Shown piece by piece: positions 1,194 through 24,153 of a stretch of DNA of 64,000 nt; the first letter of the stretch is position 1, and every line of letters starts with the position of its first letter. The DNA lies in NCBI GenBank assembly GCA_907165135.1, contig OU015568.1, forward strand, positions 992,001-1,056,000, in the 5' to 3' direction. Origin of the DNA: Oikopleura dioica (Eukaryota > Animalia > Chordata). The notes below the pieces were generated by a model. The model saw nothing but the letters and a program-made list of their open reading frames with translations. It had not been told where the DNA came from and made no database searches. Position numbers and translations under genes: made by a program.

Positions 1194-4077
1194 ATGAGCT
1201 CATCATCAGACTCGGAGCGTATCAAGTTGAACCCAATAAACTCGGAAGATCAAAAAGAGAAAGAAAAGAAAACAATGGCCTGGAGTAATTTTCTATTGTT
1301 GGTGACGTTTCCCCTCGAAGGGTTGATTTTCTTCGGGACAATTATGGGTACGTCTATCTTTCTTTAAATATCCTAAACAGACCTGTCCCCCTTAATTTTT
1401 CCTTTCAGGGTGGCCAAATATGGTCGAAGTCCTAAAACAACTCCATGTTTACGAAGATCTCTGCGATTTGAACTCAAACGAGACTGAAATAACCAACTCC
1501 ATCGTCAACTGCAATCAACGAGATGTCATTTTCAGCACTGCCGGGACCATCGGCGGCTTTTCTATGAATGTAATGACTCTTGTCTTCGGCCTTATCGTCG
1601 ACAAGAAAGGGCTTTTTCTGAGCAGGAGCTTGATAACTATCACGGTAACTGTTGGGCTCCTTTGCTTGATGTTCACGCCTGATGCAAACTGGCTCATGTT
1701 TCCGGGGATTTTCCTTCAGTCGGCGGGAGGATATGCTTTTGTCTTGACAAATGCAACGATGTCAACTCTTTTCCCGAAATTTGCAGCGATTGTTTTAGTT
1801 CTTGGACAGTGCTTGTTCCAGATTGCGAGCTCGTACTTCAGGAATGGCTGAGAAAATAAGCTGAGAGCAAGAAAGCCTTCGGAAACGAGGAGCTTTTTTG
1901 AGCCCAAGAAAAGAGTTTTGTCAATTATCTTCGATTCCGGAGTTCCATACAAATGGATCATCGGCGCAAATATTCTGTTGACGATTCCTGTTTGGATCAG
2001 AACCCTGTTTTTATTCCCCGAAAAACGATTTGAACTTGATATGAATGTTTTCAACGAAAGCTTTTTTGGTAAGTGATGATTTCATTTTATGCTCCTTTGA
2101 TCATTTTTCCAAATAACAGTAAGAAAATTGTGGTAAAGTTTATTTTTGTTTCAGAAATATCGTCTCTCGAAGACATGATATTGAATTTTATTTGGGGAAT
2201 ACTTGTCGAGTAGACCTATATCGACAATTCGGGAGGGAAAGATTAAAGGAGACAAAGGTGAAAATTTTTGTTGACCTTTTGAACTAAGCTACCATCGAGT
2301 AGAAGTAGGCATTTCGTAAGTCGTTGTTTGATATTCTCCCGACATACAGATTGCTTGGAGTTTGGTTTCGCATCCGTCTGGAAACAAAGCTGCATGATGG
2401 TCATTATCCAAATTGTGTGAGCTGCCCATAATGCCTCTAATTTGATTGTATCTAAGAGCCGAACAAGTAGAATTCGGGTAATAGAACCAAGAATAGTGAG
2501 TAATATCCGGATCTACCAAATCGCTGGTAATACTCGATACTAACTAAATAAGACATACTTAAAATCTGAAATAAGTAAAAAAAAACTAACCAGTTCTTCG
2601 CCATAAGGATTTTTATGGTTTGGTTGGAAAGCCAATTCCATGTCCTGCTCATTGCAATATTCTATTGCCTCATCGTACGTCATTAAATCATCGGATTTAT
2701 GATAAATGACTGGGTCGATCATCGGTGGCTCAGTTGTCTCATAATCCGTAGAGCCGTCCTTGCAATCTCCCTCCGAGAACTCGAGTGAAAGTTGATTTCC
2801 TCGCCGTGTTATTTTGTCGAGAACTTGGCCTTTATCAAGAGCCATTTGCGCGATTCTCTTGAAAATTTACCATGATAACATTTTTCAGAACCCCCTCCCC
2901 GTCAGCTGTCGGGGGTCCTTAAAAGATATCTTACTTCAATTTCTCCTGCTGGAACGTTGTTCAGCGGAATACAACTAGCAAAGGCGAAAAAATTGAAAAG
3001 CTTCATGTTTTTTCCTTAACGATTCAGTTTGATTTATTTCAAAAATTTTTTTCTTAAAGTACAAGGATTGGCAGGCGAGAGCATTTTTTTACAACATCTA
3101 AAAAAACTGCCCGCACGTGGGTCAATGCGCGCGGGCACTAGAAATAATCCCCGAGCGCAGAGGTAAACCGCATGGGACAGAAGTTCTAACCATTCATTAT
3201 CCGCAACTGGGTTATTTTTACCCGTCGCGTTCTGCATGATAAGAAACTAGATTCGCAATAATTACTAGGAAAACGATTCCGAAAAACACCGATTGAGCCG
3301 GAAAAAAATGATGGAAAGAAAATGGAAGACAAAAGCGACAACACAGCGAAAGAAAAAGAATCGAGTTTGAAATATTTCAAAGACGTCAATTACCTGATCA
3401 TGGTGGTTTGGATCGTCTTTGCCAATCTCAACGTTCTCTTCTGCACTTTCACTTGGAATGCGTACACAAGACTCGTAGCTGGAGATGATTATCAAACTCA
3501 TGTGAATAGTTTTGGCAACTTTGCTTGGACGGCTTCGATTTTCGCGATCACGGTTGGTTTGTGCTCTGATGGACTGACAAAAGTGTTCAACAAGAAAACG
3601 GCTGCTTTTGGAAAGATTCTTGGAGTCTTCATTTTTGTCATATTGAATTTGATTGTTGGCGTTATTTTCGGAATCCTACAGGTAAAAATTTTACTCAAAT
3701 TTTAATCTGAAATTTGTTTTTTCAAGTTGTCATTCGATGAAGATTTGTTGCTACCAACTGTTTTTATTTACAACATTTACAGAGCCTGGGCGTACTCACT
3801 CGTCGCCGTTTTTGTCAAATTCATGTTTCCGATGAAATTTTTCGGCAGCCTTCTAGGCGCGCAAAGATGCGCTCTTGGAATCACAAGGTAACAACTTTTG
3901 AAAAAATAGTTCATGATTTTTAGTTTGGCGATGCTTGGTCTGCCGGAAATCCCGAAAGAGTATGGAGAAGATGGATTCAGAGGGATCTTTTACTTCTTTA
4001 TTGCGACGCAGGTGGCAATGATTGCGTTTCCAATTATTTTGGGACGAAAACTTATCAGAATGAAAAATGAACAATAG
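1194..4077 (+). CDS. SLC43-family (LAT3/LAT4/SLC43A3-like) MFS transporter
   Basis: MSSSSDSE...LEGLIFFGTIM|GWPNMVEVLKQLHVYEDLC matches the SLC43 TM1/'GW..L..VLK...Y..LC' signature; about 12 hydrophobic segments. Introns include non-canonical 1842-1913 and a 1.2 kb intron 2069-3268. Stop TAG 4075-4077. Confidence 0.8.
1842..1913 (+). other. Non-canonical GA-AG intron (alternative GG-AG 1841-1915)
   Basis: The ORF stops at SSYFRNG*. Removing gaatggctga...cccaagaaaag restores SSYFR-VLSIIFDSGVPYKWII, and no GT donor gives this frame. Confidence 0.75.
2289..3006 (-). CDS. Secreted C-type-lectin-like protein nested antisense in the SLC43 intron
   Basis: Signal peptide MKLFNFFAFASC, GT-AG intron, then ...MTYDEAIEYCNEQDMELA... 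and ...CSAL...DGCETKLQAIC, the CTLD-like Cys pattern. One internal junction is unresolved. Confidence 0.6.
2888..2918. mobile_element. Collapsed relic (two termini joined) of the TTAA/GGAACCCCC MITE family
   Basis: gaaccccctccccgtcagctgtcgggggtcc|ttaa matches both ends of the copies at 28231 and 41799; lies in intron 1 of the lectin gene. Confidence 0.55.
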
Positions 4078-4200
4078 AATTGTGCCTTTTTTAAAAAAGA
4101 AATCACTGCTTGATGAAAATAAAATCTGTCAGACAAAAACAATTTATTGTTTCTGATTTCTTGAGAAGAGCATGATCAATTACTTAAGCTCAGTTACAAA

Positions 4201-4429
4201 TTAGGCCATTGGACTACAAGAAGTCTTTCTCAAGATTTTGTTCATCAGCTTTTTGGCTTTAGCGAGCTTCTGTGGGATTCTTTTACCAAGCCGCGTAGGA
4301 GATAGCTTATCGATGCGGTCGAGGCAGACGAAATCGTCATAAAAGCCCAAAAGGCTGTCGTAAAAGGTTTGAGCGGCGAAGCAGGGGTCAGCGATGTCGA
4401 TGGTTGGTTCAACGAAATCTGGGCCATTT
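4201..4429 (-). CDS. Tandem duplicate of the terminal exon of the SMB gene (alternative last exon or relic)
   Basis: Open frame NGPDFVEPTIDIADPCFAAQTFYDSLLGFYDDFVCLDRIDKLSPTRLGKRIPQKLAKAKKLMNKILRKTSCSPMA* is paralogous to the exon at 4621-4853. No upstream exons of its own. Confidence 0.65.
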
Positions 4430-4620
4430 CTTTTTTAAAAAATATCAAAAGAACAACAAATATCACTGAAGATTAAATCATTCAACTTTGAAAAACACTA
4501 ATCATTTTGTATCTAGATACATAATTCCTTTATTTGAGATAAATAATAAGAATTTCAGTGAATCACTAATCAAATGCCCTAAGAAAACTACGATCGAATT
4601 TCGATTGTTGATTATTTTTT

Positions 4621-5510
4621 CTAGACAATTGGTGAGCAGGATGGGGTCTTTCTCAAGATTCGGTTGAAGAGATTCTTCGCGTGCGCCAGTTGAGCGGGGA
4701 CTTTGGCGGCGATCTTTGGTGGAACTCGATCCAAGCAGACGAAGTCATCATAGAAGCCGAGGAGGGAGTTGTAGAAGGTTTCGGCGGCGAGGCAAGGATC
4801 AGTGATGGCGATGGTAGGATCGATGTAGTCTGGTGCAACTCCTTGTTTGAAAGCTTATCGATTAAAGTTCGAGATTTATAAAAAAGATTTCTATCAAAAA
4901 GCCTTTCCTGGGCCAGCACCGGCCGGGTTCACGCAGGGACTATCAACGTAGTCATTAAACCAGCCGAATCGCTGCTTTATCTTGTAGAAATTCTTCAGGC
5001 CATCGTTGGGATGATCGGAAACAGCGTCGTCAAGAACGAATTCGAGCTCGTCGTATTTCTCTTCCAGTTGAACGATTGTGGTTGTTGAAGTTGTTGTTGT
5101 GGTCGTTGTCGTTGAAGTTGTTGTCGTTGTTGTCGTCGTCGTTGTTGTCGTGTTGGATGCTCCTCCTGGGCCAGGTGCATTTGGGTCGCCGTTTTGGAAG
5201 CCACAAGAGCCTTATCGACAGAGTGGCAATTTTTTTTCTTGGAAAAATGAGAATGAAATCGCGCTCCGGTTCCTATTAAGATATTGCAAATGCCGGTGGT
5301 ATCGTAGTCATCACAGCAGTCGCCATACGAGCAGCAAACGGCATCGCAATAGCACCCATTGGAGCAAGATCCCCCGTTGCTTTCGAATTGACTTCCACAA
5401 CACTTAGGATTATCGACTGCCGCGCAGGAACCAGAAGATCGTTCTAGAGCCGTAATATTGCCCCGTTGTCTCTCTGCAAGAGTTGCCGTAAAAAGATAAA
5501 AAAGCTTCAT
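4621..5510 (-). CDS. Secreted somatomedin-B-like domain + Thr-rich linker + 4-Cys C-terminal domain protein
   Basis: Signal MKLFYLFTATLA; SMB-like CYCDAVCCSYGDCCDDY; poly-Thr stalk (5076-5150); last exon AFKQGVAPDYIDPTIAITDPCLAAETFYNSLLGFYDDFVCLDR...TPSCSPIV*. Confidence 0.75.
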
Positions 5511-6044
5511 TTTAGCAAAATTGATTTCCACGACTGACCAACGAGTGTTGTAAATTAAGGCCAAAATCGTTTTAACGATTATCTTTATTGCCTCTTCTGA
5601 GATTTAATGTTTGGTATGCTACTTCTGGACGAACGGGTTCATCGATCGGGATTTTCAATTGATATCATTTAAGCAAATTAAAAATTTTTCTGACCCCCAT
5701 AATGGGGGCCCCATTGGTTCGAATTTCAAATTTTAACATGAGCAAAAAAAAATATTTTTTTTTGTCATTTTTTCAGAAAACTTTTTTCGGTTTACATTGT
5801 ATCTTCTAGGGCTGCCAGTTCAACCAAAGATACGGGGAGGTGTCTGTTACCGATAAAAAAATTTCGACAAATTTTACGTTAAAATTTTCAACCAATCAGA
5901 ATCTTTGATTCCGGCAAACCGGCCAATCAGCAGCCGAGTAACCGTCCACGCGAAATTTTTGTCGGTTCTAGACACCATCTGACGATTCTACCGAAAATAG
6001 ATCTAGCGGCTAGCCTAAGATAAAATCAGATTTTAAATTGCTTT

Positions 6045-6694
6045 GACGCGCTTTTTTTAAGGTTACTGTATTTATTTCTCTCACTTACTACTTTGAAGAC
6101 CCAGATCATTATATATATTTGGAATCAGTAGATAATATCTAGAAACTTGACCATAACCGATTCTCAAAAATCACTTCCGTTTACGATTCTAGAGCCGAAC
6201 ATGTAAAAATCATTAACGAACGGTACCCAAAGAACCCCTAGACAATGGCATATCAAATTGAGTCTTGTGTCATTTTACTAAAATGATTTTAGAAAAGCCC
6301 GTGATAAAATAAAGGCTAGATAAGCTTTTCATAGGTGATTCTAGAGGCAGAAATTGATAAAATTTGAAAATCGGAAGTTGCGTCATCACAAAAAAACAGC
6401 ACTCACTCGCTTTAGCATCGAAAGAGAGCATATCTAGCCTTTATTTTATCACTGGCAACTCTAAAATGACACAAGACTCAATTTGATATGCCATTGTCTA
6501 AGGGTTCCTTGGGTACCGTTTGTTCATGATTTTCACATTTCCGGCTCTAGAATCGTAAACAGAAGTGATTTTTGAGAATCGGTTATGGTCACGTTTCTAG
6601 ATATTTTCTACTGATTCCAAATATATATAATGATCTGGGTCTTCAAAGTAGTAAGTTGGAGAAATAAATACAGTAACCTTAAAAAAAGCGCGTC
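6045..6694. mobile_element. Foldback/MITE with ~270 bp inverted arms (inner TTAA|GG...CC|TTAA element 6061-6678)
   Basis: 6045-6322 is the near-perfect reverse complement of 6431-6694 (gacgcgctttttttaaggttactgta / tacagtaaccttaaaaaaagcgcgtc). No ORF. Confidence 0.9.
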
Positions 6695-7526
6695 TTTGCG
6701 GTGAACCACGAACAATAATACTTTGGCGTCTACTATAATTTTCTGCCGCTCATGGCGTTAAAAATTTATTATGTTAGCGCTCACCGACGATGATTTAATA
6801 TGCTGACAACCCGTCAAAAATATATCGCAATAACCTTCTCAGGATAGAACCAACTCCAAAAAGAGCTGTTTTGGAAAGAATATTGATAAGAAAATTGATA
6901 AACAATTCACTTTTTTAAAAATTTTTAATTTGACCGGAATTTTTCGTTAAAAAAACGATACAAAAACCAACGTCAACTCAAACAGAAAAAATAAAATCAA
7001 AATCCAAAGCGACCATTGATTTCGGCTTATTTCTAGAACACCAAACAACCGGACCTGGGAAAATGATTGACGGTTCCGACTCTTGTGACTCACAACATCC
7101 CAAGAGCCGCCAATTTATGAGAGTCAGATGTTCAATTGGCGCCGCGGTTAGTGGATGATAAAATAAGGTAGCTCTTATGTTTATTGCTGTTGCCGGTTAC
7201 CATTGACGATAAGTCTATTTCAAAGGTTCTCACGAATAACGACATAATCATAACGTGTCTAAAAACGTCTTATGATTCAAAAGTTATGAATAAAAATCTG
7301 CTGAAATAAAAAATAAATTGAAGTTTTTTGTCCTCTTTCATCTCTTTCACTACTTTTCTTGATTCGAGTTTAACACCTCGTAAGAAGGACTCTGAAAAGA
7401 TTGTTGGTTCTAGCAGCTTGTGCCTTGTTGACTGAGGGAACCGATCTGACAGCTTGCTCAATAAAGTTCGGGTTTTATCAAAAGTGATATTTACCGCGAG
7501 CAGCTCAGATTTATGGAAGTTGAAAG

Positions 7527-9168
7527 ATGAGGGAGAGAAATATTTCCGTCAAGCTGAGAATTCGGCCACAGAAGGAGATAACCAACGAAGTTATCAAAGT
7601 GGTCAAAAACAAAAAGGCTGAAATCGAAGAGGATCGCATAAAATTCAAAAATCATGAATTTTTCCCCGACGAAATGTATGTTGAAGAATTACAGTTAATT
7701 ATGAAATTTTTGGACATTTTTTGTCCCAAGATTTTCGCAAAAATGTCCAAAAATTTGATACACGCTGCCAAAAAAAATGTCCCATCCAAAACGCTTAAAA
7801 AATTTTTTTTTGAGAAAAATCTCCATCATCCTCTGTTTCATCCTTCTTCTTTAGACAAAAAATGTTCTAGGGGTACGAGATCAACCTTCAATCTTATCTT
7901 TCTCAAAGAAAAAGTATGATTTTTCATAAGAAAAAACGTCATATTTGGCAAAAAACAGAAAATTTAAAATCTAAGCGCAGAAAATGTCCAAAAATTTGAT
8001 ACAGTCACTTTTGAAAAGTGTCCCAAGAAAACCGCTTAAAATTGCAAAAATGCCCAAAAATTTGATGTCCAAAAATTCCATAAAAAACTGTATCGTTATC
8101 AGCACTTTTAAAAAAATGCAAAAAAAGAAAGCCCAAAATCATAAAAACTTTTAGTTTTCGATCAGATGGAGACTACATCAAGCTCGAGAACGGATACCTC
8201 GCCCCACTATTCGTCCCAAACCCGACTTTTTGCGACCAAGGAATAATTTTCTATGAGGTTGCTCAGCCAATGATTGATGCTCTCTGGCAACACGAAAGGT
8301 AGAAAGACCAGTGTTTCTGTGAAAGACACTCTTCTTAGTTCGACCCTTATTCTGACAGGCCCGTCAGAATCAGGGAAAAGATATACGCTTCTTGGAACAG
8401 AGGATAATCCTGGAATACTCAAAGTTCTGTTTGGCCAGATTTTCGATGTCGTCAATCAAAAGCGTCTCCAAGGGCAAAAAACGAAAGTCAACTTTTCAGC
8501 AGTGCAAATTTATGATGAGCAGATTCAAAACTTAGCGAGGCATCCAGCTTCATGGCCTTCCAAGGGTCTTCCATCACATACCTACAGGTTGAATTGAGAT
8601 TTTCTTTTTCGACTTTCACGATAAATTTAGACGGATTGAATTCTTTGATAGCATTGATGAAAATGTATTCAACGAAAGTGAAGCCTCTCGTTTGCTGAAT
8701 AGAGCGGTGGAAAATCAAAAAGAATTCATGGAAGAAAATTTCGTGACGAAAGAAGAAGTCCATACTCTTTTCAGAGTGAAGCTAACACAAATAATCGGCA
8801 TGCAAGCAAAAGAAGCAACGATGACTTTTGTGGTGATGACTGCTTCGGAACTCAAGCATTACAATGGAAAGGTTATTTCTAGCAACAGGTAGAACGAGCA
8901 GTTTTCATTGAAAGAAAAATTTATTTCTAGAAGAAAAACGACAAAAGACACTCATCAAGACCTTTTATCCTGGCTCCAATTTCTGAAATCTCCAACTCAA
9001 AAAAGACCAAAGCAAAGTTTTTGCGCCCTGACGAAAATCATGAAGGAATCATTCTTTCGAAGCTCGGAAATCTGCGTCCTTGGCACGATCTTCCCGCCTT
9101 CGGAGAATTCTGCAACTTTTACATTTCTGTCAGATCTTGGTTCTCTCATGAAAAATAAAGAATTCTAA
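7527..9168 (+). CDS. Highly divergent kinesin-motor-domain protein (probable pseudo-ATPase)
   Basis: N-term ISVKLRIRP (kinesin 'V.VRVRP'); P-loop region ILTGPSESGKRYTLLGTEDNPGIL; VNFSAVQIYDEQIQNL ('S..EIYNE.I.DLL'); C-term ALTKIMKESFFRSSEICVLGTIFP ('KLTRLLQDSLGGNSKT.MI..ISP'). Stop at 9168. First intron junction unresolved. Confidence 0.75.
7686..8150. repeat. Decayed AT-rich repeat (aaaatgtccaaaaattt units, both orientations) in the kinesin intron
   Basis: Unit recurs at ~7739, ~7981, ~8048 and ~8065, with an inverted copy at ~7686. Confidence 0.6.
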
Positions 9169-9463
9169 GGCTCAATCTTTCAAATTATTCTTTCTTTTTC
9201 TTTGCTCAATTATTCAGAATTTCATCGATCGACTCTACTCTTTTTCAACCAAACGGTTTCTAGCCTTGAATCTTCGAAGAAAAAATGCGCTTAATTTTAT
9301 TGATTTGTTCAGTTAGAGGAAAGATATGGAATTTTATGGTCGACGAAATGGGAAAAACCTCAGAGGATGCGCAAGAGGAAGAATTGAAGTATTCAAAGGC
9401 GGAGCCGTGTTTATTTGAGTTTCAATATTTTTGAAGAGTTTTAAAGATACCTCGAATTAGAAA

Positions 9464-11494
9464 ATGATAAAACTCTCAAGAGATGTTGAAGGGGGTCATA
9501 ATTTCCCGAAAACCAAAGGAGAGCCACCAGATATCCAGCTCAAAGAAAACCTGCGCGAATGCATGGACTTGGGAATCGATTGCGTTCGAAAGCTGAACTT
9601 ACAGCACTTCCACTGCGATCGCCTACCCCCGCGCCCCGAGTTCATTCTAGAGGAGCACGTCGAAAATAGCAATTTTGACAAGGTCTATTCTACTGGAACA
9701 ACTGGAATGTCTTACACGATGGAGGGCAACAATCCCTGGATTATTGGCGGCCAGAACTTTACCATCACAAACACGACTATGAAAATGCAGTGGAACTACG
9801 CTGGAAATGTTTTGAAGGGATACAAATGGGAAAAGAGCTGGATAAAGATGGCGTATCTAAATATTCCAAGAACAGGGGCTGTTTCGGAGTTTTTTAATGG
9901 GAAAGTTTGGACTTGTGGAGGAGCGACGAATGGGAATGAAATCAGGAAAAGATTTGTTTTTCGACTCAAAATAAATTTTTTTCGATCATTTGAAAATCTG
10001 GAAAAGTGATGAAAACGTCGAACTCGGCATCCACAAACTCAAAGAATTTCAAAATGGAACCCATCGGCTAATCAACAATACCCTTCCTTACGATTTCAAA
10101 GTGCTGAGTACTTCAATGGCCTTTCTCGACTCATTGCCAGAAGAATACTCTGGTCTTGACGCAAATATTATTGCGAAGAAGTTGTGGGCGAGAAGAAGTC
10201 CTCACGCCGGACCGGGCGAGGAAGGCGACGGGGTAAAACATGGCTTAGATTTTTTCCTGATAGATTTTTAGTGGAGTGCGGGGCTGGAATTTGCAATGAC
10301 CGCTACTGGCCCTTATGGCGGGTGGAAAGGGAATCCGAAGCATAGAATCTTTTTCGATAATTTTGACATCCGCGAAACCGCGACATGCGAGATCTACATC
10401 GACAGAGATGTCGACAAAAAAGGCTGGCACTACCAGTTCATCCCACCAGGACCGTCTCAAGAGCAAATTAATAACGCGCCTAAAGACAGATGGGAGTTTC
10501 ACAGCGAACAGATGAATGTTGCCCGGAGATCTGCATCCTCTGGCGTCGTGAAAATCCTGGAAGAAGATGTCGAAAATGGAGTTTCTTTTCTTCAAGAGTA
10601 TTTTTACGTCATTGGTGGGGAGCAATCGTGCCCGGGTTGTATTTGGCCCGGAAAATCGAAGAGTTTGTTGAGCTCGGTTGAAATCATGAGTCTCAAAAAT
10701 GAAGAATACAAATGGGAGTTCGGGCCCTCGCTCCCAGGAATGTTTCATTCATTGCTTTTTTGAGAGTAAAAAATGACTGTTTGAAATTATAAAAAAGAAC
10801 CGATTTGCTGCGCCAGCTCGATTGTCATTGTTGACATCATTTATCTCTCTGGAGGGCTAGTTTTGAGCGAAGAAAAAGAGCTGGTGAAATCCGACAAAGT
10901 CTTGCGACTAAAACATGGAACATCGGAATGGACTCACTTTCGAACAATGAAGGTACCAAGGGCGTTTCATGGAAGCTTCATGTTTCAGAAACTGCTCAAG
11001 ACGAAATCGAGCGAAGTCGGTGAAGGTAGGTTTTGGATGTACTTGATCGATTTTTAACCTTGTTTGAAGATGATATAATTCTTGTTGGAGGGACAAATGT
11101 AGTTTCAATCAAGACTGGCGAGCTTGATGCTTTTGGAGAAGAAGAAACTATTGACGTCCGTGCCGAGCATATCCCGATAACTGGAGATAAAGGAGCCGGT
11201 CTTTATTTATTCAATATTCATTTTTATCCGAAAATAATCAAAAACGCCCATCTATTGAACTTTTATTGACATCGATAGGCACCATGTGTCGATATTTAGT
11301 TAAGCTCGTGTCAAATCTTGACCACTATAAAAGCGCTCGAAGTAAAAAACTTCAATCGAACTTTCGACAGAGGAGTAATTTTCACAACGATACAAATGCA
11401 TCCAGACGCTGAGCCGCATGATTCGCCAAATACTGGTTTTGAGAATGAAATTTCCATGATTGTCGCATTCATCGCATTCTTGCTACTTGAATAA
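9464..11494 (+). CDS. Kelch-repeat beta-propeller protein with hydrophobic C-terminal tail
   Basis: Kelch motifs MAYLNIPRTGAVSEFFNGKVWTCGG, FYVIGGEQSC...SSVE...WEFGPSLP and WTHFRTMKVPRAFHG; ends ...NTGFENEISMIVAFIAFLLLE*. True start lies upstream (~9330-9460) and is unresolved. Confidence 0.7.
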
Positions 11495-11624
11495 AATTTC
11501 AAAAGCAATAAAATCTTTACTTCGAAAGCACATATAAAATTTATTGAACACGAAACAAGAATTATTCCAGTTAATTTTTAAAATGATAAAAGGGCACAAA
11601 AAACTGGCTAAGATGCATTTGATT

Positions 11625-12286: not shown

Positions 12287-13507
12287 TTACTCGAGGTCAG
12301 CGATGATTTCTTTGAAAGCCTTCTTGAGCTGCTTGTCAAAGCTCTTGGTGAAGACCTTCTTGTAGTTGCTTTGTCGAGAAGCGAGAGTGTTAGCGATGAA
12401 GTCGTCATCGAGATCGGCAAGCTCGTTGGGTCGGACAATGACGGGGTAGGTAGCGAATTTGGAGGCGGTCTCGGTGGCGATCTGAATAGAAAAAATGCTA
12501 TTTGATAATTTTTCTAATTTTTCTTACCTCGTCTCGGTCAGCAACTCGGCCAGATGGAGTCTGGAGCTTCTTAAGATCCCACTCTTCATCGGAGACGATG
12601 ACAAGGATTTGGTTTCTGCTGGTCTTTTGGTATTCCAAGTTAAGATCCTGGAGAACAAGGAAGAGCTGGCCGTTTCCGTCAAGACCTTCGGAGTAGGACT
12701 GAAAATGATCGTTAAAATTGCTTTGATTTTGGTTTTATTTGAGCTGTTAAAAACCGTCAATTTTATTATTAAAAATTTTAAAAATCGATAAAAATTTGTA
12801 AAAATTCTTTCAGGGCCTATTTTATTGGCTGCGCCGCGGAATTTGCACAGCACTATTTTTTATGTTCAAACCCAGCGGATATACGAAGAAAACGGTCGTA
12901 AAAAATTAACTTACTTGTCGGGTAGCGCGGTCGAGAGAAGTCTTGGCAACTTCTTCTTTGTAGTGGAGAAGTCCGGAAGTACCTGCAGCGCCGCCGCTGC
13001 CTGGCTTGTAGGCACCCTCGAGCTGCTTGATTCCGGAGAATTGGAGGAGTCGGAAGGTTGCTCGGTCACCAAGCTTCTGCTGGAGGCCGGGGATGAGGTC
13101 GGAGTCGATGATCTCCTGGGTGGCTTCAAACGCATCTCCGGCATCGATCTCACCGTTGATGGAGACCTTGTTGTTGTAGGAGTCGGAACCGTCGATGAGG
13201 ACGAGGACGTCGTACTCAGGCTTGGGTTGTGGAGCAGGTCCGCAGAGGCACTCACCGCCGATTCTAATATCGTCGAGCTTGGCCTTGGTTACAACTGCCA
13301 CTCGGGCGTGGATGTTGATCCTAGAAAAGTTTATTCGAAGAAGCGGCAACCTGATTCCAAGAAATAAGTTAATTTAAAGTCTTTATCTTAAAGTTTAACC
13401 GTCAACCTATTTCTTAATCTAACCCGAACCCTAACCCTAATCTCTGATACTTACTCGCCATGCATGGCAACCTCCGGGGAGGTAACGCAAATCTCTCGTC
13501 GTGGCAT
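12287..13507 (-). CDS. Single VWA-domain protein without signal peptide
   Basis: MPRREICVTSPEVAMHG|EINIHAR...YDVLVLIDGSDS (MIDAS DxSxS), FRLLQFSG, ILVIVSDEEW; four exons with GT-AG introns; stop TAA 12287-12289. Confidence 0.8.
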
Positions 13508-13534
13508 GATGAAGAGGTTGTTTAGAGTTTGATT

Positions 13535-13580
13535 GAAACCGAACTGAGCTCTGCTTCGAGAGCGCGTGATTATAAAAGGG
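13535..13580 (-). promoter_or_regulatory. Candidate TATA + Inr core promoter of the VWA gene
   Basis: Minus strand reads TTTTATAATC, ~20 nt, then CTCAGTT (Inr-like TCAGT), directly upstream of the 5' UTR. Confidence 0.4.
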
Positions 13581-14439: not shown

Positions 14440-14702
14440 TCATTTAACTTGTAAAAACTAGATCGTGGCCTGTTTCATGGCAAAGTTCATGATATAGGCC
14501 AGATGGTATCACGAAAACAAGCCGCATTTTTCTTTTAACAAGCTCTTAAAATAATGTTTACGTTTATTAGAACTTGTTAAAACTTATGACCGGCTTGCTT
14601 CGTAAACAAGATGACACATAAATTTAACAAGCTCTTTGAAACGAAAATATTTTTTATAGAACTTGTTAAAACCAATGTGCCGGTCTTTTCGTAAACCGCA
14701 AT
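14440..14702. repeat. Short tandem array (~89 bp period, ~2.5 units) of hairpin units
   Basis: ttaacaagctct-N22-agaacttgttaa at 14535-14580 and 14624-14669, each followed by aac...ccgg...ttcgtaaac; partial copy at ~14446. Confidence 0.7.
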
Positions 14703-14852
14703 TTTATCTGCTCTTCGTCATGAACTTTGAAGCGATGGACAGCACTTCATTGCTTTTATTGCTGACCTGGCCTTTCAAACGAATTCCTGTGGTAGGTACT
14801 CAAATGATCCTTTCTATTTTTCAGCCATTATTTTTGAAGAATATTCGGGATT

Positions 14853-15763: not shown

Positions 15764-15910
15764 GAGCGAATAAAATATAAATAAAGAAAGACGACAGATT
15801 GTCTTGACATTGGTTTGTTTATTTTGTTTCAGTTGGTCGGATGGAATTCAGCCAGTGAATAAAAGAATGAAATATAACTAGGGAAAGGGGATTCTTTAAG
15901 AATCCATTGT

Positions 15911-16579
15911 TTAGTGGAGGAAGACGTTGGCGGCGTTGAGCTCGAATCGGGCGATTTCCAAAAGAGAGCAGGAGTTGAAGTCACCGTCAAGCTAGAACAA
16001 TAATGAGAGCTATAAGAATGAGTGGTATTTTACCTGGGCATCAGCGTAGGCAGCCTGGAGGGCACCCCACTGGGCATCAGAGACGGACCATCCCCAGCTG
16101 GATCCAGTGGAGAGGACCTGGTCCTTCCATGCGCTGAGCTCAGCGCCGGAGAGGATGTTGTCAGCGTTGCTGTCGTAAGCATCGATGACGACTCGGGCGT
16201 TGGTGGCGGCGAAGGCACCGATGGCGAGCTTGAACTCTTCGAAGTCGAGGGAGCCGGAACCGTCGAAGTCGACAACATCCCAGTATTTGGCACCGAACTG
16301 GTAGAGGTAGTTCTGGCTACCCTCGCTCATCTCGACGTAGTTGGCGATTCGGGCGGCGCAGGTGGTGAGCTCGGTGCTATCGACGGCTCCATCGATACCT
16401 CCGCAGAAGCTGAAGAGGGGCTGGTAGGTGGCGTCACCGACGGAGTTGACGGCGGCGGCGAATTCGGTTGGGTTGGCAACGGCAAAGTTGTAGACGTTGA
16501 CGGCCTCGGACCACCATTGATTGGTGATCCAGACGGCGGGGGAGGCGGTGGCGGCGGCAACGAGTCCAAGAAGCTTCAT
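15911..16579 (-). CDS. Secreted EF-hand Ca-binding protein
   Basis: Signal MKLLGLVAAATA; EF loops DFDGSGSLDFEEF and DSNADNILSGAEL plus two degenerate loops; one intron; last exon LDGDFNSCSLLEIARFELNAANVFLH*. Confidence 0.85.
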
Positions 16580-16884
16580 TTTTACTGGCTTAAATTAAGT
16601 TTAAGACTTTTTTCTTGAATTCAAGTGATTCTCTCTTCGCTATTCTTACCTTTTTAGAGATTTGTTAAGAATAATCTGAGGCTCCGATGGCTGTACACTT
16701 GCTTATATGCGCCCGGTGAGTCCCAAGGTCAACTTTGCCGCGATCAACAAGCCGGTGTTGATGGATGGCATCAACAAATAAACGATCAGGCGAAACCGCC
16801 GCATCTTGCAACAGTATCTACGCAATAGAACTGAACTCAGAGCAAAGGTCGTAGAGTACAACTGACGATTTATTTCAGAATTTT

Positions 16885-17816
16885 TTACTGGGCATTTTTG
16901 ATGATTTTTTTCGCCTTTTCAACAGCATTGCCAAATTTTCTCTTCAGAATAACTTCCTTATTCCGCTCGATTCCCATTAAATAGTCATGGTCAGAATGAC
17001 TTCCGTAGGCGAATTCGGAAGCATCTAGAGTTGGATAATCGGTTTCTTCGCCATCTTCTCCCGAGTGTTTGAACCAATACATGAAGCCCATTGAGTTCAC
17101 AACAGGATCGCCGCCGAGTCGAATACGCAGGTGTTTCTTGACTCTGAAAACGAACATAAGGAAGCTTAAAAATAGATGTTTTCTCAAACCTCTGCTTGAA
17201 TAAATCTTGAAGAGCCCTATTACCGATTTTCGGCGAAGCAACAGTGACGACGAGAAAACTCGTCGCTTCGTATTTTGGTGCCAACGATGCACCAATTAAA
17301 CAAGCCACCGCACCACCAAGTGAGTGACCACAGATCAAAATCTCATCGACCTGTTTTTCTTTCAAAGTCGCGTCAAGAAAACTTTCGATTTTCGGTTTCA
17401 GCGCTTCGAAGCACTCGTAAAATCCATTGTGAGCAAAAGCTTCCGTTTCTTCGAATTTAACTTGACAAAGACGCAAATTTTGGAACATTTCTTGAAGTTC
17501 TTTCGTTCCTGTGATCGTCACAATCGCAAATCGTTTGCCGTCGACATTGTCAACTGGCTTTTCTTTCGCGTAAATGAGGACCGCGTCAGATGCGGTTTCC
17601 TCGTCACGGATGCTTTTGGATTCGAAAGTTTCGAATCTTTTCATAAAAGATTCAAAGTTGCTCTTTTTCGGAAATATTTGTAAAAAAAAATTTTTTTCTA
17701 CTCATTGTCCGACTCCTTTCCTTCGTTACAGGTGTTTGCTTGATCTTGTTTTTCGGAATCCGGTCCCAGTCAATTGGTGAATGATTGTCCTTTACAGACT
17801 CGGCGATGATTTCCAT
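16885..17816 (-). CDS. Class 3 lipase (alpha/beta hydrolase)
   Basis: ITGT oxyanion region, AHNGFY, ILICGHSLGGAVA nucleophile elbow, SPKIGN, GDPV (Asp) and HSDHDY (His). Confidence 0.9.
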
Positions 17817-18357
17817 AAACTCAAATTAAGGTAAAAAGAAGAAAATTCATTTTCTTCTTACATCATGATACTAGGCAAGAAGAGCGAGTCGAGTTGAAAA
17901 CTGAATTTTAAGTATCTAATCAATTGAAAAATTTTGGAAATTTTCATCAATCCATTCTCTCGCATCTTTGTTGAAAAAGTACGCGACTTTATCCTTTAAA
18001 AACTCCGCGCATTGCATTATCAAAAAAATAAAGTATCTCTCCAGTTACTCTTTATTTCTTTCCTTTTGAATATTTCCAGTATTTATAACCCAGCACAGGA
18101 AAATAAACTTTTATTGTAAAAACCTATCGCAGAATACAATTTATTTATTTTTAAGGACCCCCCCTCGGTTGAAATCATGAAGCAGAAGCTTTTGCCCGGG
18201 ACTGATTTGAACTTTATTTTGTTGACAAGTCTGCTGTGAGAGCGGCACTCTAGCACTCGAAAATCCGCAAACAAACAATTGCTGAAGATAGTTGTGTAAT
18301 TTGCATCTAATTATTCATCAACTGTTTTATTTATTTAGCAAATTTTGATTTCGAAAT

Positions 18358-20536
18358 CTACAGACACTGAAGTGGAGCTTCGAAAGCTACAGAAGTTGTG
18401 AAATAGTCGCCGGTTGGGTTCTTTTCAAACTCGATTCTGTGGACAGTTTCAACATCTCGGACAAAAAGGCCATCCCACAGGAACTTTTCAATATCGCCTT
18501 CTCGACTAAAATGGCTTAGAAATGAGGCCATTTTTTTATAAGCTTACTTTTCGCTGAATCCAGAAATTGAGTAAATAAAGTTGTTTTTCATCAAAATCGC
18601 GGTGTTCGAGTGGACCGGTTTGTTCAAAGCCCCCTTTTCTGTCTTAAAAAATCATGAGTTTTTCTATCAGATCTAACAGACTCACCCAATTTCCGTCAAA
18701 AAGCCAGATCGAAGAAAGTGTTCCCGCATCAGTAAGACCTCCGACAACCATGAAGCCTTGAGGAACTTGAACAGTAGCAGCACGCTCGATGAATACTTCA
18801 GAAGGGAAAGTTCCGAATTCTTCCCATGATCCAGTCAGCGATCGCTTTTCCATGTAGTTATCACTTTTTCATGTTTTCATTTAGTCATCAATTTCACCCT
18901 TGAAAACTTTGATAACGAAAAACATTCCTTGTTTGAGGATTTGAATAGTTCCATCCGCCAAAAGCGTACAATTCATTCTCAAAATGCCCCAAAGATCCAA
19001 AATAGTGGCCATAGTTTGATCTTCCTTCGATTACTTCCACATTTTCTCCGTCAAAAGTCTCGCATCGCGCCCACTGAGTGGTAGAAGTCGAGAAACACAA
19101 ATAACCTGAATGATTTTTTGAAACACCATAATTGACAAAGATCTTATTTCTTTTTATAGTAATTGTTCGTCTCTTCGCCGAACTCATTTTCTACCACATA
19201 ACAGAAAGACAACATGTCAAGAAAGTCAACAATGTCGGCTTAATTACTTACTTTTTTCATTCAAAATAGTCATATCTCCATAATGCTGGGAAAACCCAAT
19301 TTCTAGCTTCTGGCTCTGCATTTCAACGGAACAATCCTTCAAGATCGCGATCTGGGTTAAATTCGTCAATCCTCCGAGAATAAACTGCTGTCCCTTGAGA
19401 AGAGCAGTCCCAGAATCGTAGACGAATCGGTCGGGAATTGCCCAGTTTGGCTTGGACACAGTATTATCGTTTTCGACGAAGAGGGCGACGCGTTCGAGGA
19501 CAAAATAACTATCGCCAAGAACGGTCAAGCCGGTTTCTGCTGGACAGCCACCGTAGCCGTTGTCGCAGGGGCAGCCGTTTGGACAAGTGGCGCCACAGGG
19601 ACAGTTTCTGATTTCGGAAGAGAATATTTCTTGGCACTGACTCACGCATTGGTTGTTTCCACTGCAGGACAGGAGGCAATTTCTAAAAAAGTATCTTATG
19701 ATCAAGACGTCCTGATCCATAAATTTGCCAAATTATCAAATTGATAATTATTATATACCGATCAGATCTGGAAAATTAGGCGGTGAGGATGACGTGGCCT
19801 TCGATTTAACCAATGAGAGCCAGCCCTCGCTCTCTCGGTCTGAGAGGGCTTCAGACCCAGATTTGCGGCCGCCTAAGCTACCAAATCTGATCGGTATATA
19901 TATTTATATTGATATTATATACCGCGATTATCATTCCTGAATGACGGACTCTCATCCGTCATTCAGTCGTTTGGACATTTTACAATGCAAAATTTGTCCG
20001 AACGAGCGAAAATTGCGTGGGCGGCCCTGATTGTCCCGTCACTCAGAAATGATAATCATGGTATATATTTCTTTGTGGTCATGATGAGATCTATTTTTCG
20101 TACTTAAACTTGCTCACAAAATATGATAGCAATTTTTATTTACTGACCAATGAATTTTTATTGTTATGGTTCTTTTCCAAAAATCATGTCCTTACGCGTA
20201 AACTCGCTCAGCATCTTCATAGCAACTCGTGAAGTCTTCATTTTCTTCCGGAATGAAACAGGCGCCACATGTATTGCTTTCACAGCCAATGCAGCCAGCG
20301 AAGCATTCAGTGTGGCAAGGACAGCTGTTTCCGCAGTCAAACATGTCCCTCGCGCAGTTTTCTTCGCAGAAAGAGTTTTCGTTGCAATTGCGCTTGCAGA
20401 AATCATAGTCGGATGAGCACTGGCGGACACATGCTACTTCTCGATCTCCATCCGGGCAATTCTCGTTAAAACTGTATCCACCGAAAATCTCATTTGCGAA
20501 AATCGAACAAATCGTTAACCCTAGTAATTTCATCAT
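18358..20536 (-). CDS. Secreted Cys-rich-repeat + Kelch-like propeller protein (family copy 1)
   Basis: Signal MMKLLGLTICSIFA; two modules of type C..QC...C...C...C..NCPC...CP.GCPC; propeller motifs QQFILGG, YLCF...CETFDG, HYFGSLGHF..LYAFGG and FMVVGG; ends ...APLQCL*. Confidence 0.8.
19752..19900. mobile_element. TA-flanked MITE in intron
   Basis: TIRs tataccgatcagat..aattaggcgg / ccgcctaag..atctgatcggtata. Confidence 0.7.
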
Positions 20537-20731
20537 TTCTGTCTGCAATTTTTCGCTTCAAACTTCTGTTCTTATCCGGAGCTTTTGCCCTTTGACATTT
20601 CCCGAGCGCTTAAATTTTATGAATTTGGACTCAAGCCTGCAGATGAACTCGTAATATTTTGCAAGGCTTTCGTAACTGTACTTTGTGCTTTGTTCGTTGT
20701 GGTTTATTTGTTTTCAGTTTAAATATAGGTT

Positions 20732-23700
20732 TTATTTTGCTACTCGTTTTGAACACGTCAGAATGGCTGAAATCAGGTTGAAATCAAGGAAGAGAATAAT
20801 TTTAGAATTTTACCTATGAAGGCAGATCGAAAGGCTGGATTGCACGCGGCGTAGCACACTGGGTTGAGAGTACTTTCATCGGTTAGGAAAAACGAGACAG
20901 AAGAATATGATGATGAAAAAACCGAGTCCTGTTGAGATAGCATAGCCAGTAGGAGAGCTCCCAAGCTATCTCTGGAACTTGCATTTGAAGCGAGGCGTAA
21001 ACTTTATTGGTTTCTTGAGATATTTTTAGAGAATGAATCTGAAAAATTGCGTTTCAAATACTGAATAATTATAACTTACATGATTTAAAACGTACACATC
21101 GCTGTAAAACTCGTTGAATATTACAAATAGTTTTCTTGGACCAATAATTTAAAAAATTGCAGGTCCACTAGCGGTTTAATTTAATATGGTGTTTAAAATT
21201 TTATTTAATCAATCAATTTTCTTTATCTAAGAAACTGCTCCTACAAGGATATTATAAGGCGCCCAAAGGCTTATAAAGACTTGAGGCTGACAAAAAATAG
21301 TATTGTGTAAATTCAACCTATAATATCAGACTTTCGCTCCAAAATTTGTCATAAAATTAACATTTTGTCAGCCCGTGCCGAAAATAATGGCAGCTAAAAG
21401 CCTTGTTGCTCTTGACTCTTTCTTCAAACTTTTCAGTTGTCGTCCATACTGCGGTTTTTGAGGTTGCGGAGTCGCCGCTGAAGATACCGTTGATTAGAAT
21501 TAGTCGAATTTTTTAACCTGTTGACGAGGCATCTTTTTTGCTGGCGAGGCGCGACCAGAACGACTTTTTCTCCTTTTCCTCTTTTTCGCCGCTGTCGTCG
21601 ACGTTCGAAATTTGGCTCGGCTCGTCTGACAGATCCATCGTTCCCTTTGAGTCCTGCTCATCCTTAATCCAGAATGAATAAGCGAGTCTGGAACGGATTA
21701 AAGAGACTTACGGATATTTTGATGCTTGAAGTCTTTACCGGGCTTGTTGCGTCTTTGGCCAGCTTATTTACTGTGCTGCTGATTACGGCGTTTTGCAGAT
21801 TGCTGTAAAGAACAAAAATAAATAATAAGCAAAAAGGGGGAAAACTACATTTTCTACAAAGAAGAATTAAGTCATGTCATAGTGGTTAATTTACCAGAGG
21901 CTCTTTTCGTGAATGTCTACCTGACCAGAGTTGCAAATTTGGCTTTATTTTCGCTGAGCTGAGCTGAGTGAGAAATTCTCTGAGCTGAGCTGGCCTATTT
22001 CGGAGCTCACTGAGCTGAGCTGAGCTGGCCTATTTCGGAGCTCACTGAGCTGAGCTGAGCTGGCCATTTTCAGAGGTCATTGAGCTGAGCTGAGCTGAGC
22101 AGACCTTTTTTAAGGTAGTTGAGCTGAGCTGAGCTCAGCAGACCCTAATAATTAGGGCCTAATTAGAGCTGAGCTGAGCTGAGCTGAGTGAGCTGAGTTG
22201 AGCAATTTTTTACTGTTTTTTAGAAGTGAAATTTTGTTAAAATCATTGAGCTGACCTGATTGAATGATACTTCTCTGAGCTGAGCTGAGCAGAACAGATC
22301 ATGTTCGAGAATAATTGAGCTGAGCTGAGCAGATAAATTCATTTTCGAAAATCAGTGAGCGGAGCTGAGCTGAGCGACTGCTCAGCTCACTCAGCCAGCT
22401 CAGCTCACTCAGCTCAGCAAATTTGCAACTCTATACCAGATGGGGATATTTTCGGTCTCAGATTGACGATGATTATGTAATCTCGTCAATTTCTGACCGG
22501 AAATAGCAATGCCTAGCAGACAAAGTAATCGAGTGCCCCTGTAAATCTGCATCTTTCCAGATGAAATCCCTTTGGGTCATCTGGGTTGAGACTACTGAAT
22601 CAGCAGTACTGATCTAGTCTTACAGTATTTCAGTTCGATTTGAGTTGTTTGAAGGATCATGCGATCCTTTTCTTCTTATTGAAAAACGCGATTTAAACGT
22701 TTTTGCTGAGGAGCGATTCGAAATGCCGAAAATTATTTGCGACACTTTGGAATTTCTTCTAGATATTTTGTCAATAAGCAAAATATTTTAATAAAGACAC
22801 CATAAAAGATTTTTTAAAACATTAAATTGAATATTTATCGTTGATAAACTCAATTGATTATTCATTAAAAGTGTTAAGACCCAGTGGCGGGTTGTTCAAA
22901 ATGACTATTTTTCTTGTGTAAGTCGTAAAAAGAGCTTTTGATTTTTTATCGATAATTACTTTTTTCTCGCCGCGATCGTCATGTACACCTTTGCGTAAAG
23001 AAACATCATCGCAATCGCAGGCACATAAAAAGCCCCTGAACGATTACATAACCATCATTGATTGATTTTGAGCAACTTGGCATTTCAAAAAAGTGCGTTC
23101 CAAACCTGCCGAAGTCGCTAGACCGATGGCAGCAGACTCAAAAATGGCCTTCACGTAGCATTTATTAGCAGCTGGCTGCTGCTTTGGATCGACCATTTGC
23201 CACAGGACCCATGGACCCCAAAGAATGGCAGAAATGATCCAGGTCAAGGCCATGGCGATTTTGACATGCACCAGTTTTCGATGGTTGCGGTACTTCACCG
23301 GGAAATTTACCGACAAATATCTGAAAAAGAACAAGCTTCGAAACCTCTTATCTAAGAATTGGTGAGTACCTATCTATACAAATAATGAGCAGATTGAGAA
23401 CGGATGCATTTGAGGCGACGTAGTCCACTCCCAGCCAGACATTGCAGGCGAAGTTACCCATGTACCAGCCGCCCTAAACAAAAAAACTCGGTACGAAAAT
23501 AAGGGTGTCGCCATTTTAATTGAATAATGATGAAAACTCTCTTACCTGTACAAGGTAAACAGTATAAACATTCATAGAATACATTCCGATAATCTTTGCT
23601 GAAGGTTTATAATCGAACGCAATTGAAATTGTTTTTAAAATATCCTTATGAGCTGAGCGAGGCTAAACCCGAGACAAATCGGCGATGGCTAAGTTGAGGA

Positions 23701-24153
23701 TGAGGTAGTTGTTGATTGTGCGCAGACTGCGGTAGAAGCAAAACGAAGAAATTACTTGACCAGGGCTCTATATTATATTATATTATATTATATTATATTA
23801 TATTATATTATATTATATTATATTATATTATATTATATTATATTATATTATATTATATTATATTATATTATATTATATTATATTATATTATATTATATTA
23901 TATTGAGCCCGATCCTAAGACATTTCCGCAAGAAGTTATCAGACTTGCGGTCAATGCCAAAATAACAATTGTTATTGTTGATGGAGTCGAGTAGCGACTG
24001 GGAGGCATTCCTGCCACGGCGGTGCTGAAATTAAAAAATTGATAAAGATTCTCGAACTCAGAAAACTAACGTAAACGCGCTGCTGTCATTTCCGTAAGTT
24101 GTCGGGGCAAGTGTTGTACTGATGTTCCAAGACGTCGTTCCATCTGTATTCAT
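20732..24153 (-). CDS. Muscarinic acetylcholine receptor-like GPCR
   Basis: [47 protein letters not shown] (Asp3.32, DRY), [21 protein letters not shown] (muscarinic Y-N in TM6) and [18 protein letters not shown]. At least three non-GT introns. Confidence 0.9.
20873..20928 (-). other. Non-canonical GA-AG intron (56 nt)
   Basis: tat ctc aac ag|gactcggtt...aaccgatgaaag|t act ctc aac cca restores the invariant CYLNSTLNP. Confidence 0.85.
21280..21374 (-). other. Probable non-canonical GG-AG intron (95 nt) bounded by an 11-bp TIR
   Basis: Interrupts TM6 ([16 protein letters not shown]). Ends are ggctgacaaaa / ttttgtcagcc. The only canonical alternative would insert ~18 residues into TM6. Confidence 0.6.
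21926..22433. mobile_element. hAT-like MITE with internal (CTGAG)n arrays, in GPCR intron
   Basis: TIR cagagttgcaaatttg / caaatttgcaactcta; degenerate 8-bp TSD tacctgac / taccagat; CTGAG pentamer runs flip orientation near 22375. Confidence 0.85.
23755..23914 (-). other. Non-canonical GA-AG intron (160 nt) consisting of TIRs plus a microsatellite
   Basis: gga aat gtc tta g|gatcgggctc(aatat)n...gagccctggtcaag|ta att restores GNVLVISSF. Confidence 0.85.
23769..23904. repeat. (TATTA)n pentanucleotide microsatellite, ~27 copies
   Basis: Perfect repeat visible in the sequence. Confidence 0.98.

Follow-up and report, generated by a model that had tools for sequence, protein, structure and literature searches.

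Short helices closing the non-GT introns of Oikopleura dioica and their possible part in splice-site definition

Introns of the larvacean Oikopleura dioica that lack a GT donor tend to be closed by a short helix between their own two ends, while canonical introns show no excess of such pairing. This was found in a 64,000-nucleotide (nt) stretch of contig OU015568.1 (positions 992,001 to 1,056,000 of the forward strand; hereafter the window), in orthologous introns of the Bergen lineage, and in four unlinked lipase paralogs of the Okinawa lineage. According to PMC8008620 (citing Denoeud et al. 2010) and PMC7072748 (Frey & Pucker 2020), G[A/C/G]-AG introns of the U2 type make up about 11-12% of O. 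dioica introns and have RNA-seq support. The removal of thousands of GA-AG, GC-AG, and GG-AG introns by a single U2-type spliceosome has been a puzzle since the genome paper, and earlier proposals have included U1 variants, small nuclear RNA (snRNA) modification, and a generally permissive spliceosome. The reading favored here, at a probability of roughly 0.6, is that the sampled introns form a structured, inherited class of spliceosomal introns in which a closing, bridging helix would substitute for weak splice signals. A broader proposition, in which most of the non-GT introns of this species would belong to an ancient class defined by the closing helix rather than by U1/U2AF signals, with position +2 left free and members interconverting with canonical introns, is tentative and falls slightly short of an even chance.

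A preliminary description of the window had listed four introns without GT donors (I1 to I4), each with a stem pairing its ends. All four stems are present in the sequence at the places given there. I1 belongs to an SLC43-like transporter gene on the forward strand, and the other three belong to a muscarinic-like seven-transmembrane receptor, g8657, on the reverse strand. The list was incomplete, however, as three more non-GT introns occur within the same range (9946-10006, 18864-18927, and 21002-21240), and these carry stems as well. The class introns of the window are collected in Table 1.

Table 1. Class introns of the window and the arms of their closing helices. Arm sequences are followed by window positions; the tail is the intron's 3' end.
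Intron	Position	Strand	Length and termini	Gene	5' arm	3' arm	3' tail
I1	1842-1913	+	72 nt, GA-AG	SLC43-like transporter	GGCT, AGAA, AAGCT (1846-1862)	AGCTT, TTTT, AGCC (1891-1904)	CAAGAAAAG
9946-10006	9946-10006	+	61 nt, GA-AG	533-residue gene	AGATTT (9950-9955)	AAATCT (9994-9999)	GGAAAAG
K3	18864-18927	-	64 nt, GA-AG	g8656	ATGTTTTT (18918-18925)	GAAAACAT (18871-18878)	GAAAAAG
I2	20873-20928	-	56 nt, GA-AG	g8657	TCGGTT (20920-20925)	AACCGA (20879-20884)	TGAAAG
G11	21002-21240	-	239 nt, GA-AG, annotated (P0064)	g8657 (receptor)	GTTTCTT (21229-21235)	AAGAAAC (21010-21016)	CAATAAAG
I3	21280-21378	-	99 nt, GC-AG, annotated	g8657 (receptor)	GGCTGACAAAA (21363-21373)	TTTTGTCAGCC (21285-21295)	TCAAG
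I4	23755-23914	-	160 nt, GA-AG	g8657 (receptor)	GGGCTC (23905-23910)	GAGCCC (23763-23768)	TGGTCAAG
M_j1	31475-31840	-	366 nt, first intron	MFS gene	GTTGAGTC (31833-31840)	GATTCAAT (31485-31492)	CCTCAAACAG

End pairing and splice signals of the class

An intron was assigned to the class when it was non-GT in at least one lineage, and its end pairing was scored as the RNAduplex energy between its first 22 nt and its last 26 nt. Twenty-six Okinawa introns were tabulated with their Bergen orthologues from synteny, two annotated proteins, a cDNA contig, and exon conservation, and the pooled Okinawa sample, drawn from the window and the lipase paralogs, came to 16 class and 30 canonical introns. The eight class introns of the window score between -20.4 and -6.9 kcal/mol (median about -10.8), whereas the 22 canonical introns range from -9.2 to -0.1 (median about -4; Mann-Whitney U test [MWU], 4e-5). 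In Bergen the two groups do not overlap at all, with six class orthologues at -14.6 to -7.3 and 19 canonical introns at -7.0 to -0.9 (p 1.6e-4). The preliminary description had held that non-GT introns are closed by stems and short canonical ones are not, and had proposed to compare the frequency of end pairing in the two groups. When this was done with the pooled Okinawa introns, the difference was pronounced (MWU 2.5e-7), with a duplex of -7 kcal/mol or lower in 14 of the 16 class introns and in only 2 of the 30 canonical introns (Fisher 5e-8).

The pairing belongs to the particular combination of ends. Class introns pair better with their own ends than with mismatched ones (p 8e-7 pooled; p 2e-4 and 8e-4 for the tabulated introns), while matched and mismatched ends of canonical introns are equivalent (p 0.32 and 0.22), with no pairing excess. 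The GC content of the intron ends is alike (0.34 in the class and 0.31 in canonical introns). Whole-intron fold z-scores differ in the same direction, averaging about -1.4 in the class and +0.7 in canonical introns (MWU 4.6e-4), and the closing helix is part of the minimum free energy (MFE) structure in I2, I3, K3, and the Bergen orthologues of I3, I4, and M_j1. Taken singly against same-length segments of the window, I3 and I4 alone stand out. The helices span 6-13 bp and leave an unpaired stretch of 0-5 nt at the intron's 5' end and of 4-10 nt at the 3' end. The I3 helix consists of 11 perfect pairs (-18.7 kcal/mol), and the I1 stem (GGCT..AAGCT with AGCTT..AGCC) comprises 13 interrupted pairs (-14.0 kcal/mol).

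Apart from the helix, the class is marked by weak splice signals. All members begin with G and end with AG, but the median number of matches to GTAAGT is 2.5 as against 5 in canonical introns, and the pyrimidine fraction at -14 to -3 is 0.33 as against 0.67, with a 3' tail that is rich in A (...AAAG|). Of the 24 class introns of Okinawa and Bergen, 17 have A at +2, 13 have A at +3, and 20 have G at +6; C is frequent at -9 to -11, and these bases pair with each other. An exonic AG precedes the donor in six of the eight window members (75%), including the GA donors of I1, I2, I4, G11, and K3, and in 50% of canonical introns. Both an exonic AG upstream of O. dioica GA-AG sites and an A following the GA have been described previously (PMC7072748), so that in species, termini, upstream AG, and frequent A at +3 the introns studied here resemble the known G[A/C/G]-AG introns. 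The published accounts consulted propose U1 variants or a permissive spliceosome for those introns and name neither end pairing, nor structural conservation, nor a depleted pyrimidine tract among their features, all of which mark the class here. No literature linking O. dioica non-GT introns to end pairing was found, although an earlier mention is possible in Denoeud 2010 or Henriet 2019. The class donors do not fit U12-type signals (/RTATCCTT donor, TCCTTAAC branch site), and the U12 spliceosome is absent from larvaceans (PMC13326754).

How well each junction is established varies, and this bears on a trivial explanation, namely that the true junctions lie at nearby GT donors and that no special non-GT class exists. 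The public annotation is RNA-seq-hinted (PMC8008620), and its receptor protein, P0064, could be placed on the window by exact mapping. It gives I4 as GA-AG at exactly 23755-23914, the position originally described, and for both I4 and G11 no other reading is possible. Spliceosomal status as G*-AG introns is thus supported by the P0064 mapping for I4, I3, and G11, by a metatranscriptome contig for K3, and by exact mapping of annotated proteins for eight introns of the lipase family. The K3 evidence comes from a JGI contig (L005) that, when aligned to the Bergen locus L002, lacks precisely positions 10134-10301, the GA-AG Bergen orthologue of K3. Because GA-AG is the sole AG-ending reading of this gap, the K3 junction is proven at the RNA level in the Bergen lineage. 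The GA donor recurs in a contig (L006) from a third lineage; this contig stops inside the K3 intron, leaving the 5' arm alone visible. The public Okinawa model of g8656 (P0175) instead takes an upstream GT and has a GT-AG intron at 18864-18969, thereby losing 14 conserved residues (LYAFGGWNYSNPQT) that both the Bergen-type cDNA and a protein from a MERC transcript keep. This GT model is probably an annotation error that arose from avoiding the GA donor.

I1 and I2 have in-frame GT alternatives. For I2, the acceptor as first described is confirmed, while the annotated donor is a GT located 6 nt downstream (intron 20873-20922). It yields CYLNRTRTLNP and so places RT within the NSxxNPxxY motif, whereas the GA donor restores the conserved CYLNSTLNP and sits exactly where the Bergen orthologue has its GT donor. 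Two gene models of the window, g8656 and probably g8657, therefore appear to be mis-spliced through a preference for GT. If left unspliced, I1 introduces a stop codon. An in-frame GT at 1833, 9 nt upstream of the GA, would lose YFR, and the GA donor is mildly favored, as the alignment with the ENBT1 structure extends to ...SSYF. The explanation by misplaced GT junctions is considered highly improbable, given the RNA-level proof and the 14 lost residues in g8656, the lack of alternatives for I4 and G11, the annotation of eight lipase-family introns as non-GT, and the established 11-12% of non-GT introns in the species (PMC8008620, PMC7072748). Moreover, the complementarity of the ends is there in the DNA irrespective of which donor is used.

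Class-A G protein-coupled receptors have a fixed spacing from E6.30 to W6.48. Only the annotated I3, 21280-21378 with GC-AG termini, gives this spacing. The shorter version of the preliminary description (21280-21374, 95 nt) is out of frame, and a boundary at 21372 adds two residues relative to 21378. The 61-nt GA-AG intron was required by every solution of a length-constrained exon-chain solver that fitted the annotated range and length of a 533-residue gene at 9464-11269, and 9946-10006 was its best placement. M_j1, the least certain class member, has junctions that rest only on comparison of Okinawa with Bergen, being GT-AG in the former and GA-AG in the latter.

Within I4, the loop (23770-23904, reverse strand) is a perfect (TATAA)27 microsatellite that is missing from the Bergen orthologue. 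It has thus grown within the hairpin-closed intron and left the arms undisturbed.

Inheritance across lineages and paralogs

The Okinawa and North Atlantic lineages split about 25 million years ago (bioRxiv 10.1101/2023.05.09.539028). Window positions 18375-32059 have their syntenic counterpart in the Bergen (OdB3) locus L002, and the six class introns that can be compared are all found at identical positions in both lineages. The introns themselves have changed considerably, with lengths in Okinawa and Bergen of 56 and 151 nt for I2, 160 and 70 nt for I4, 239 and 81 nt for G11, and 64 and 168 nt for K3. Their loops cannot be aligned and their arms are only about 60% identical, yet pairing is present in both lineages. 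The GA-AG orthologue of G11 (L002 8434-8514) has a GTTTC/GAAAC core at matching offsets, and the GC-AG orthologue of I3 (8308-8394) partly retains the helix at -14.6 kcal/mol. In I2, the Bergen intron is GT-AG with the helix TTGGTTA/TAACCAA, and the Bergen I4 (L002 6239-6308) is GT-AG with GGCTTAAGA/TCTTGAGCT. I2 and I4 thus combine an Okinawa GA donor with a Bergen GT donor, and M_j1 shows the opposite. Since donors flip at fixed positions while the helix persists, it is the helix, and not the donor dinucleotide, that constitutes the stable feature of these introns.

Base changes in the arms often preserve pairing. A hand alignment anchored on splice sites and conserved cores was used, because automated mapping of helix pairs between the lineages misaligned the arms. 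With these two lineages alone, it revealed five compensatory changes and about six one-sided changes that keep a G.U pair. The compensatory changes are C:G to T:A in I2, T:A to C:G in K3, T:A to G:C in I4, and, in M_j1, C:G to T:A and a T:A to A:T exchange that includes intron position +2 itself (T in Okinawa, A in Bergen). Such changes are suggestive of pairing that has been kept. A JGI metagenome contig (L004) proved to be of the Bergen lineage and identical in I2, I3, and G11, and therefore adds no divergence.

The four lipase paralogs, located on chromosomes 1 and 2, provided an independent test, with their annotated proteins mapped exactly and 16 introns read. Eight non-GT introns score -14.9 to -4.0 kcal/mol, as against -5.4 to -0.9 for eight GT introns (p 0.0014). 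The non-GT introns are found at three fixed sites, following SELEK, GASL, and LYWF, and at these positions (B, C, and E) the donor is GT, GA, or GC depending on the paralog. The two remaining positions are GT and unpaired in all four paralogs. Pairing is kept even though the proteins are only about 70% identical, and the class introns of this family are older than the paralog duplications.

The sole lineage-specific intron found is a 37-nt GT-AG intron of the MFS gene (30873-30909, reverse strand), which occurs only in Okinawa, the Bergen sequence being contiguous at L002 2228-2278. It has canonical signals and no end pairing, and it represents a lineage-specific intron gain or loss.

Closing helices, transposon relics, and other explanations

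The inverted repeats at the class intron ends invite an origin from miniature inverted-repeat transposable elements (MITEs), and the preliminary description proposed a family of elements with terminal inverted repeats (TIRs) that acts as an intron generator. In its active form, such a family would be inserting, recently or even now, at AG, duplicating the AG, and creating GA-AG introns. An exonic AG does precede the GA donors of I1, I2, I4, G11, and K3, and MITE-like elements do occur in the window (for example, at 19752-20067). Nevertheless, an AG|G context is the general exon-end consensus (found in half of the canonical introns; PMC7072748), and it also precedes GT donors in Bergen, so the exonic AG, although real and as first described, is not a target-site duplication. 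Every testable class member is shared with Bergen or among paralogs, including all six comparable introns in the lineage comparison that the preliminary description had suggested, and none is recent; the one lineage-specific intron is plain GT-AG with no stem. The genuine MITE-like elements sit within a canonical intron and are not introns themselves. No further copies of I1 to I4 were found in the 64-kb window by blastn-short, nor any more in some 120 kb of Okinawa sequence, and hairpins seeded on GGCT/AGCC are not enriched in the window (30 hits, made up of 15 unique hairpins that each count on both strands, as against 8-30 in shuffled sequence). An active or recent generator is accordingly very unlikely.

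More conceivable, but still unlikely, is that the stems are functionless relics of the TIRs of old MITE or introner insertions, with the non-GT ends representing element termini. TIRs of 6-13 bp are indeed present right at the class intron ends, just inside them. An exact 12-mer, GGCTGA[G/C]AAAAT at +5/+6, is common to the 5' arms of I1 and I3, the only two exact matches in the window, and the GGCT(C)/(G)AGCC core that was noticed at the outset recurs in I1, I3, and I4 and also in the lipase position-C introns. When up to two mismatches were allowed, GGCTGASAAAAT had 20 matches in the window where 16 were expected, and those with one mismatch lack a partner arm. In the related Fritillaria borealis, the non-canonical splice sites are supplied by TIRs that belong to introner transposons (Henriet et al. 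2019, as described in PMC11282704 and bioRxiv 10.1101/2025.08.15.670264), and intron gains in Oikopleura have been attributed to transposons (PMC3443670, Table 1). Neutral relics, however, would be expected to decay, yet arms that have diverged by about 40% still pair, with compensatory changes, and pairing is likewise kept across the lipase paralogs. Further, no direct repeats that would indicate a target-site duplication flank the class arms, and, as noted above, further copies are absent from the Okinawa sequence searched. The F. borealis introns are similar to those described here in coming from a larvacean, in their inverted-repeat ends, in their non-GT sites, and in relying on a U2-type spliceosome only; they are mostly AG-AC or AG-AT, have target-site duplications and species-specific positions, and belong to multi-copy families. 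The present introns, by contrast, are G-AG, have no target-site duplications, occupy positions common to lineages or paralogs, and each have their own arm sequence. For the shared core, an old common origin, an ancient element, or a preferred motif for a subset of the class are all possible.

A function of the helix in defining the intron would account for these observations more readily. Starting just inside the 5' splice site and stopping shortly before the 3' AG, the helix would keep the two splice sites together and in this way define the intron. A U1-type donor, including the T at +2, and a polypyrimidine tract would then be less required, leaving the donor free to drift among GT, GA, and GC with no loss of splicing, and the 3' end to become A-rich. 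The suggestion in the preliminary description that the hairpin may compensate for a weak donor fits well with retention of the helix despite donor flips, the compensatory changes, the poor 5' sites, and the lack of a pyrimidine tract. Formation of the helix in vivo, a need for it in splicing, and its replacement of U1/U2AF recognition are all inferred from sequence.

There are precedents for structure that assists or replaces splice-site recognition. In zebrafish and lamprey (AC)m-(GT)n introns (Lin et al. 2016), bridging tracts near the splice sites replace U2AF2 dependence in zebrafish (PMC4691745), and these introns offer a working model for the class, in that structure replaces a core recognition factor. 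They differ in that their arms are simple repeats, their termini GT-AG, their helices long, and their conservation between orthologues poor, where the introns described here have short unique arms, conserved helices, and non-GT donors. In yeast, as cited in PMC4691745 (Goguel & Rosbash 1993 and others), intramolecular pairing shortens the distance between splice signals, much as would happen here, but those introns have strong canonical signals and the stem is internal and does not close the intron. Euglenid nonconventional introns are similar in their non-GT ends, lack of a pyrimidine tract, and short helix pairing +4..+6 with -8..-6 (PMC11282704; PMC12501133). Their borders are variable and their excision may be non-spliceosomal and circular, whereas G...AG and the exon consensus are kept in O. 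dioica.

The euglenid likeness leads to a further possibility, that the helix functions in some other way, by masking cryptic donors, by binding a double-strand-specific factor, or by marking the intron for non-spliceosomal, cut-and-ligate removal. In I2 and I4 an in-frame donor, GT or GC, lies beneath the 5' arm at 6 nt downstream of the GA, and the short 5' and longer 3' overhangs resemble the euglenid arrangement (PMC11282704). In most members, though, the arm covers no cryptic donor, neither a bulge-helix-bulge nor an IRE1-type motif can be made out, and the strict G...AG termini and exonic AG|G consensus suggest a spliceosome. This alternative is regarded as having little chance.

Several observations weigh against intron definition by a closing helix. 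The 22- and 26-nt end windows were chosen by the analyst, and the sample amounts to 16 Okinawa and 6 Bergen class introns from five loci, with three lipase positions counted in several paralogs. Two class members are weak, the intron at 9946-10006 (-6.9 kcal/mol) and position B of the lipase paralog P0004 (-4.0), and the MFE fold prefers other pairings in I1, the intron at 9946-10006, and the Bergen G11. Conversely, two canonical introns, K5 and G8, also pair (-9.2 and -8.0, in Okinawa only), as do some solver-inferred GT introns at loci L007, L008, and L010, among them an inferred GT-AG intron at L007 18958-19151 with -16.6 kcal/mol. Frayed or broken pairs exist between the lineages (for example, an A:T pair of I3 in Okinawa is C.A in Bergen). 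Mechanistically, a helix over +3..+12 must open for U6 pairing, and the 3' arm of I2 covers its sole CTAAC-like branch site. Finally, the junctions of I1, I2, M_j1, and 9946-10006 are deduced rather than RNA-verified, and the case as a whole is built on sequence.

Two further Okinawa genes bear on the make-up of the class. At L007 12157-12217 (reverse strand), the length-constrained model needs a GA-AG intron, with the helix GGACAAGAAA/TTTCTTGTCC at -14.8 kcal/mol, and at L008 7678-7812 (reverse strand) it needs another, with GAATTGGTCCTT.../...AAGGAACCAAGATTC at -12.2 kcal/mol; solver models at such other loci served as hints only. As inferred GT-AG introns near these GA-AG ones also pair, the helix class probably takes in GT members. 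If true, a closing helix that acts in cis would offer a concrete mechanism, open to mutational tests, for the splicing of non-GT introns, would tie larvacean non-canonical splicing to the structured introns of fish and the nonconventional introns of euglenids, and would supply annotators with a sequence rule for non-GT introns.

Genes, repeats, and other features of the window

The window was tied to public annotation through a lipase open reading frame (ORF; 16991-17641), whose match in a protein search is the O. dioica OKI2018_I69 gene PAR.g8655. The PAR.g8655 locus (L001) matches the reverse complement of window 6885-27644 exactly, which places the window in the Okinawa lineage of O. dioica, on scaffold OU015568.1. 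The g8657 receptor has its coding sequence at 24153-20732 (reverse strand) and a product of 422 residues, and g8656 lies at 20536-18358. An exon of the SLC43-like transporter (1420-1841, forward strand) aligns with the ENBT1 and LAT4 structures. Neither exon B of this gene on its own nor a junction peptide gave an SLC43 match in the PDB, and a mixed-alignment protein search returned g8656 and relatives of an unannotated ORF but no SLC43 protein. Solver models of a kinesin gene (7527-9168) and of a 274-residue gene (12287-13507) were rejected as implausible, with many introns. Introns were resolved outside these two genes, which could hold counter-examples, and outside the regions at 1-7 kb and 32-64 kb. 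An Rfam scan of the window returned nothing.

Repeats of several kinds are found in and around these genes. Two adjacent MITE-like elements of about 150 nt (19752-19900 and 19916-20067), with 32-nt TIRs starting TATATACCG, lie within the GT-AG first intron of g8656, which measures 513 nt in Okinawa and 41 nt in Bergen. The Bergen lineage has a repeat of its own, of about 165 nt and with an internal palindrome (AGCTGAGCGAAGCGAAGCTT...), at L002 6596-6760, 7043-7139, and 1869-2017 and at L004 4232-4394. Several canonical introns carry an insertion of it, including two of the receptor gene, and these introns thereby reach 138-394 nt as against 49-72 nt in Okinawa. Large inverted repeats at 6045-6694 (233-nt arms, 95%) and 34561-34953 (87-nt arms, 97%, with outer 41-nt arms) resemble foldback or TIR elements and show no sequence relationship with the intron arms. 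Inverted and tandem repeats, nested in one another and built on a roughly 17-nt unit (CGACGTTTTCAGCAAAC-like), form two clusters at 40305-40429 and 40903-41033. An unannotated ORF of 359 residues (46796-47875, reverse strand) has no Pfam match and dozens of relatives, 45-69% identical, in short ENA/Logan contigs, and it may encode a repeat- or mobile-element protein.

The 1157-nt intron of the receptor gene contains low-complexity repeats of the CAGCTCAGCT type at about 21900-22430. It also holds a block whose translation includes ...KSRFSIRRK (22623-22775, reverse strand) that is conserved with Bergen L002 7567-7695 and appears in neither annotation, and this block may represent an exon for the third intracellular loop that is alternative or was overlooked by the annotation.

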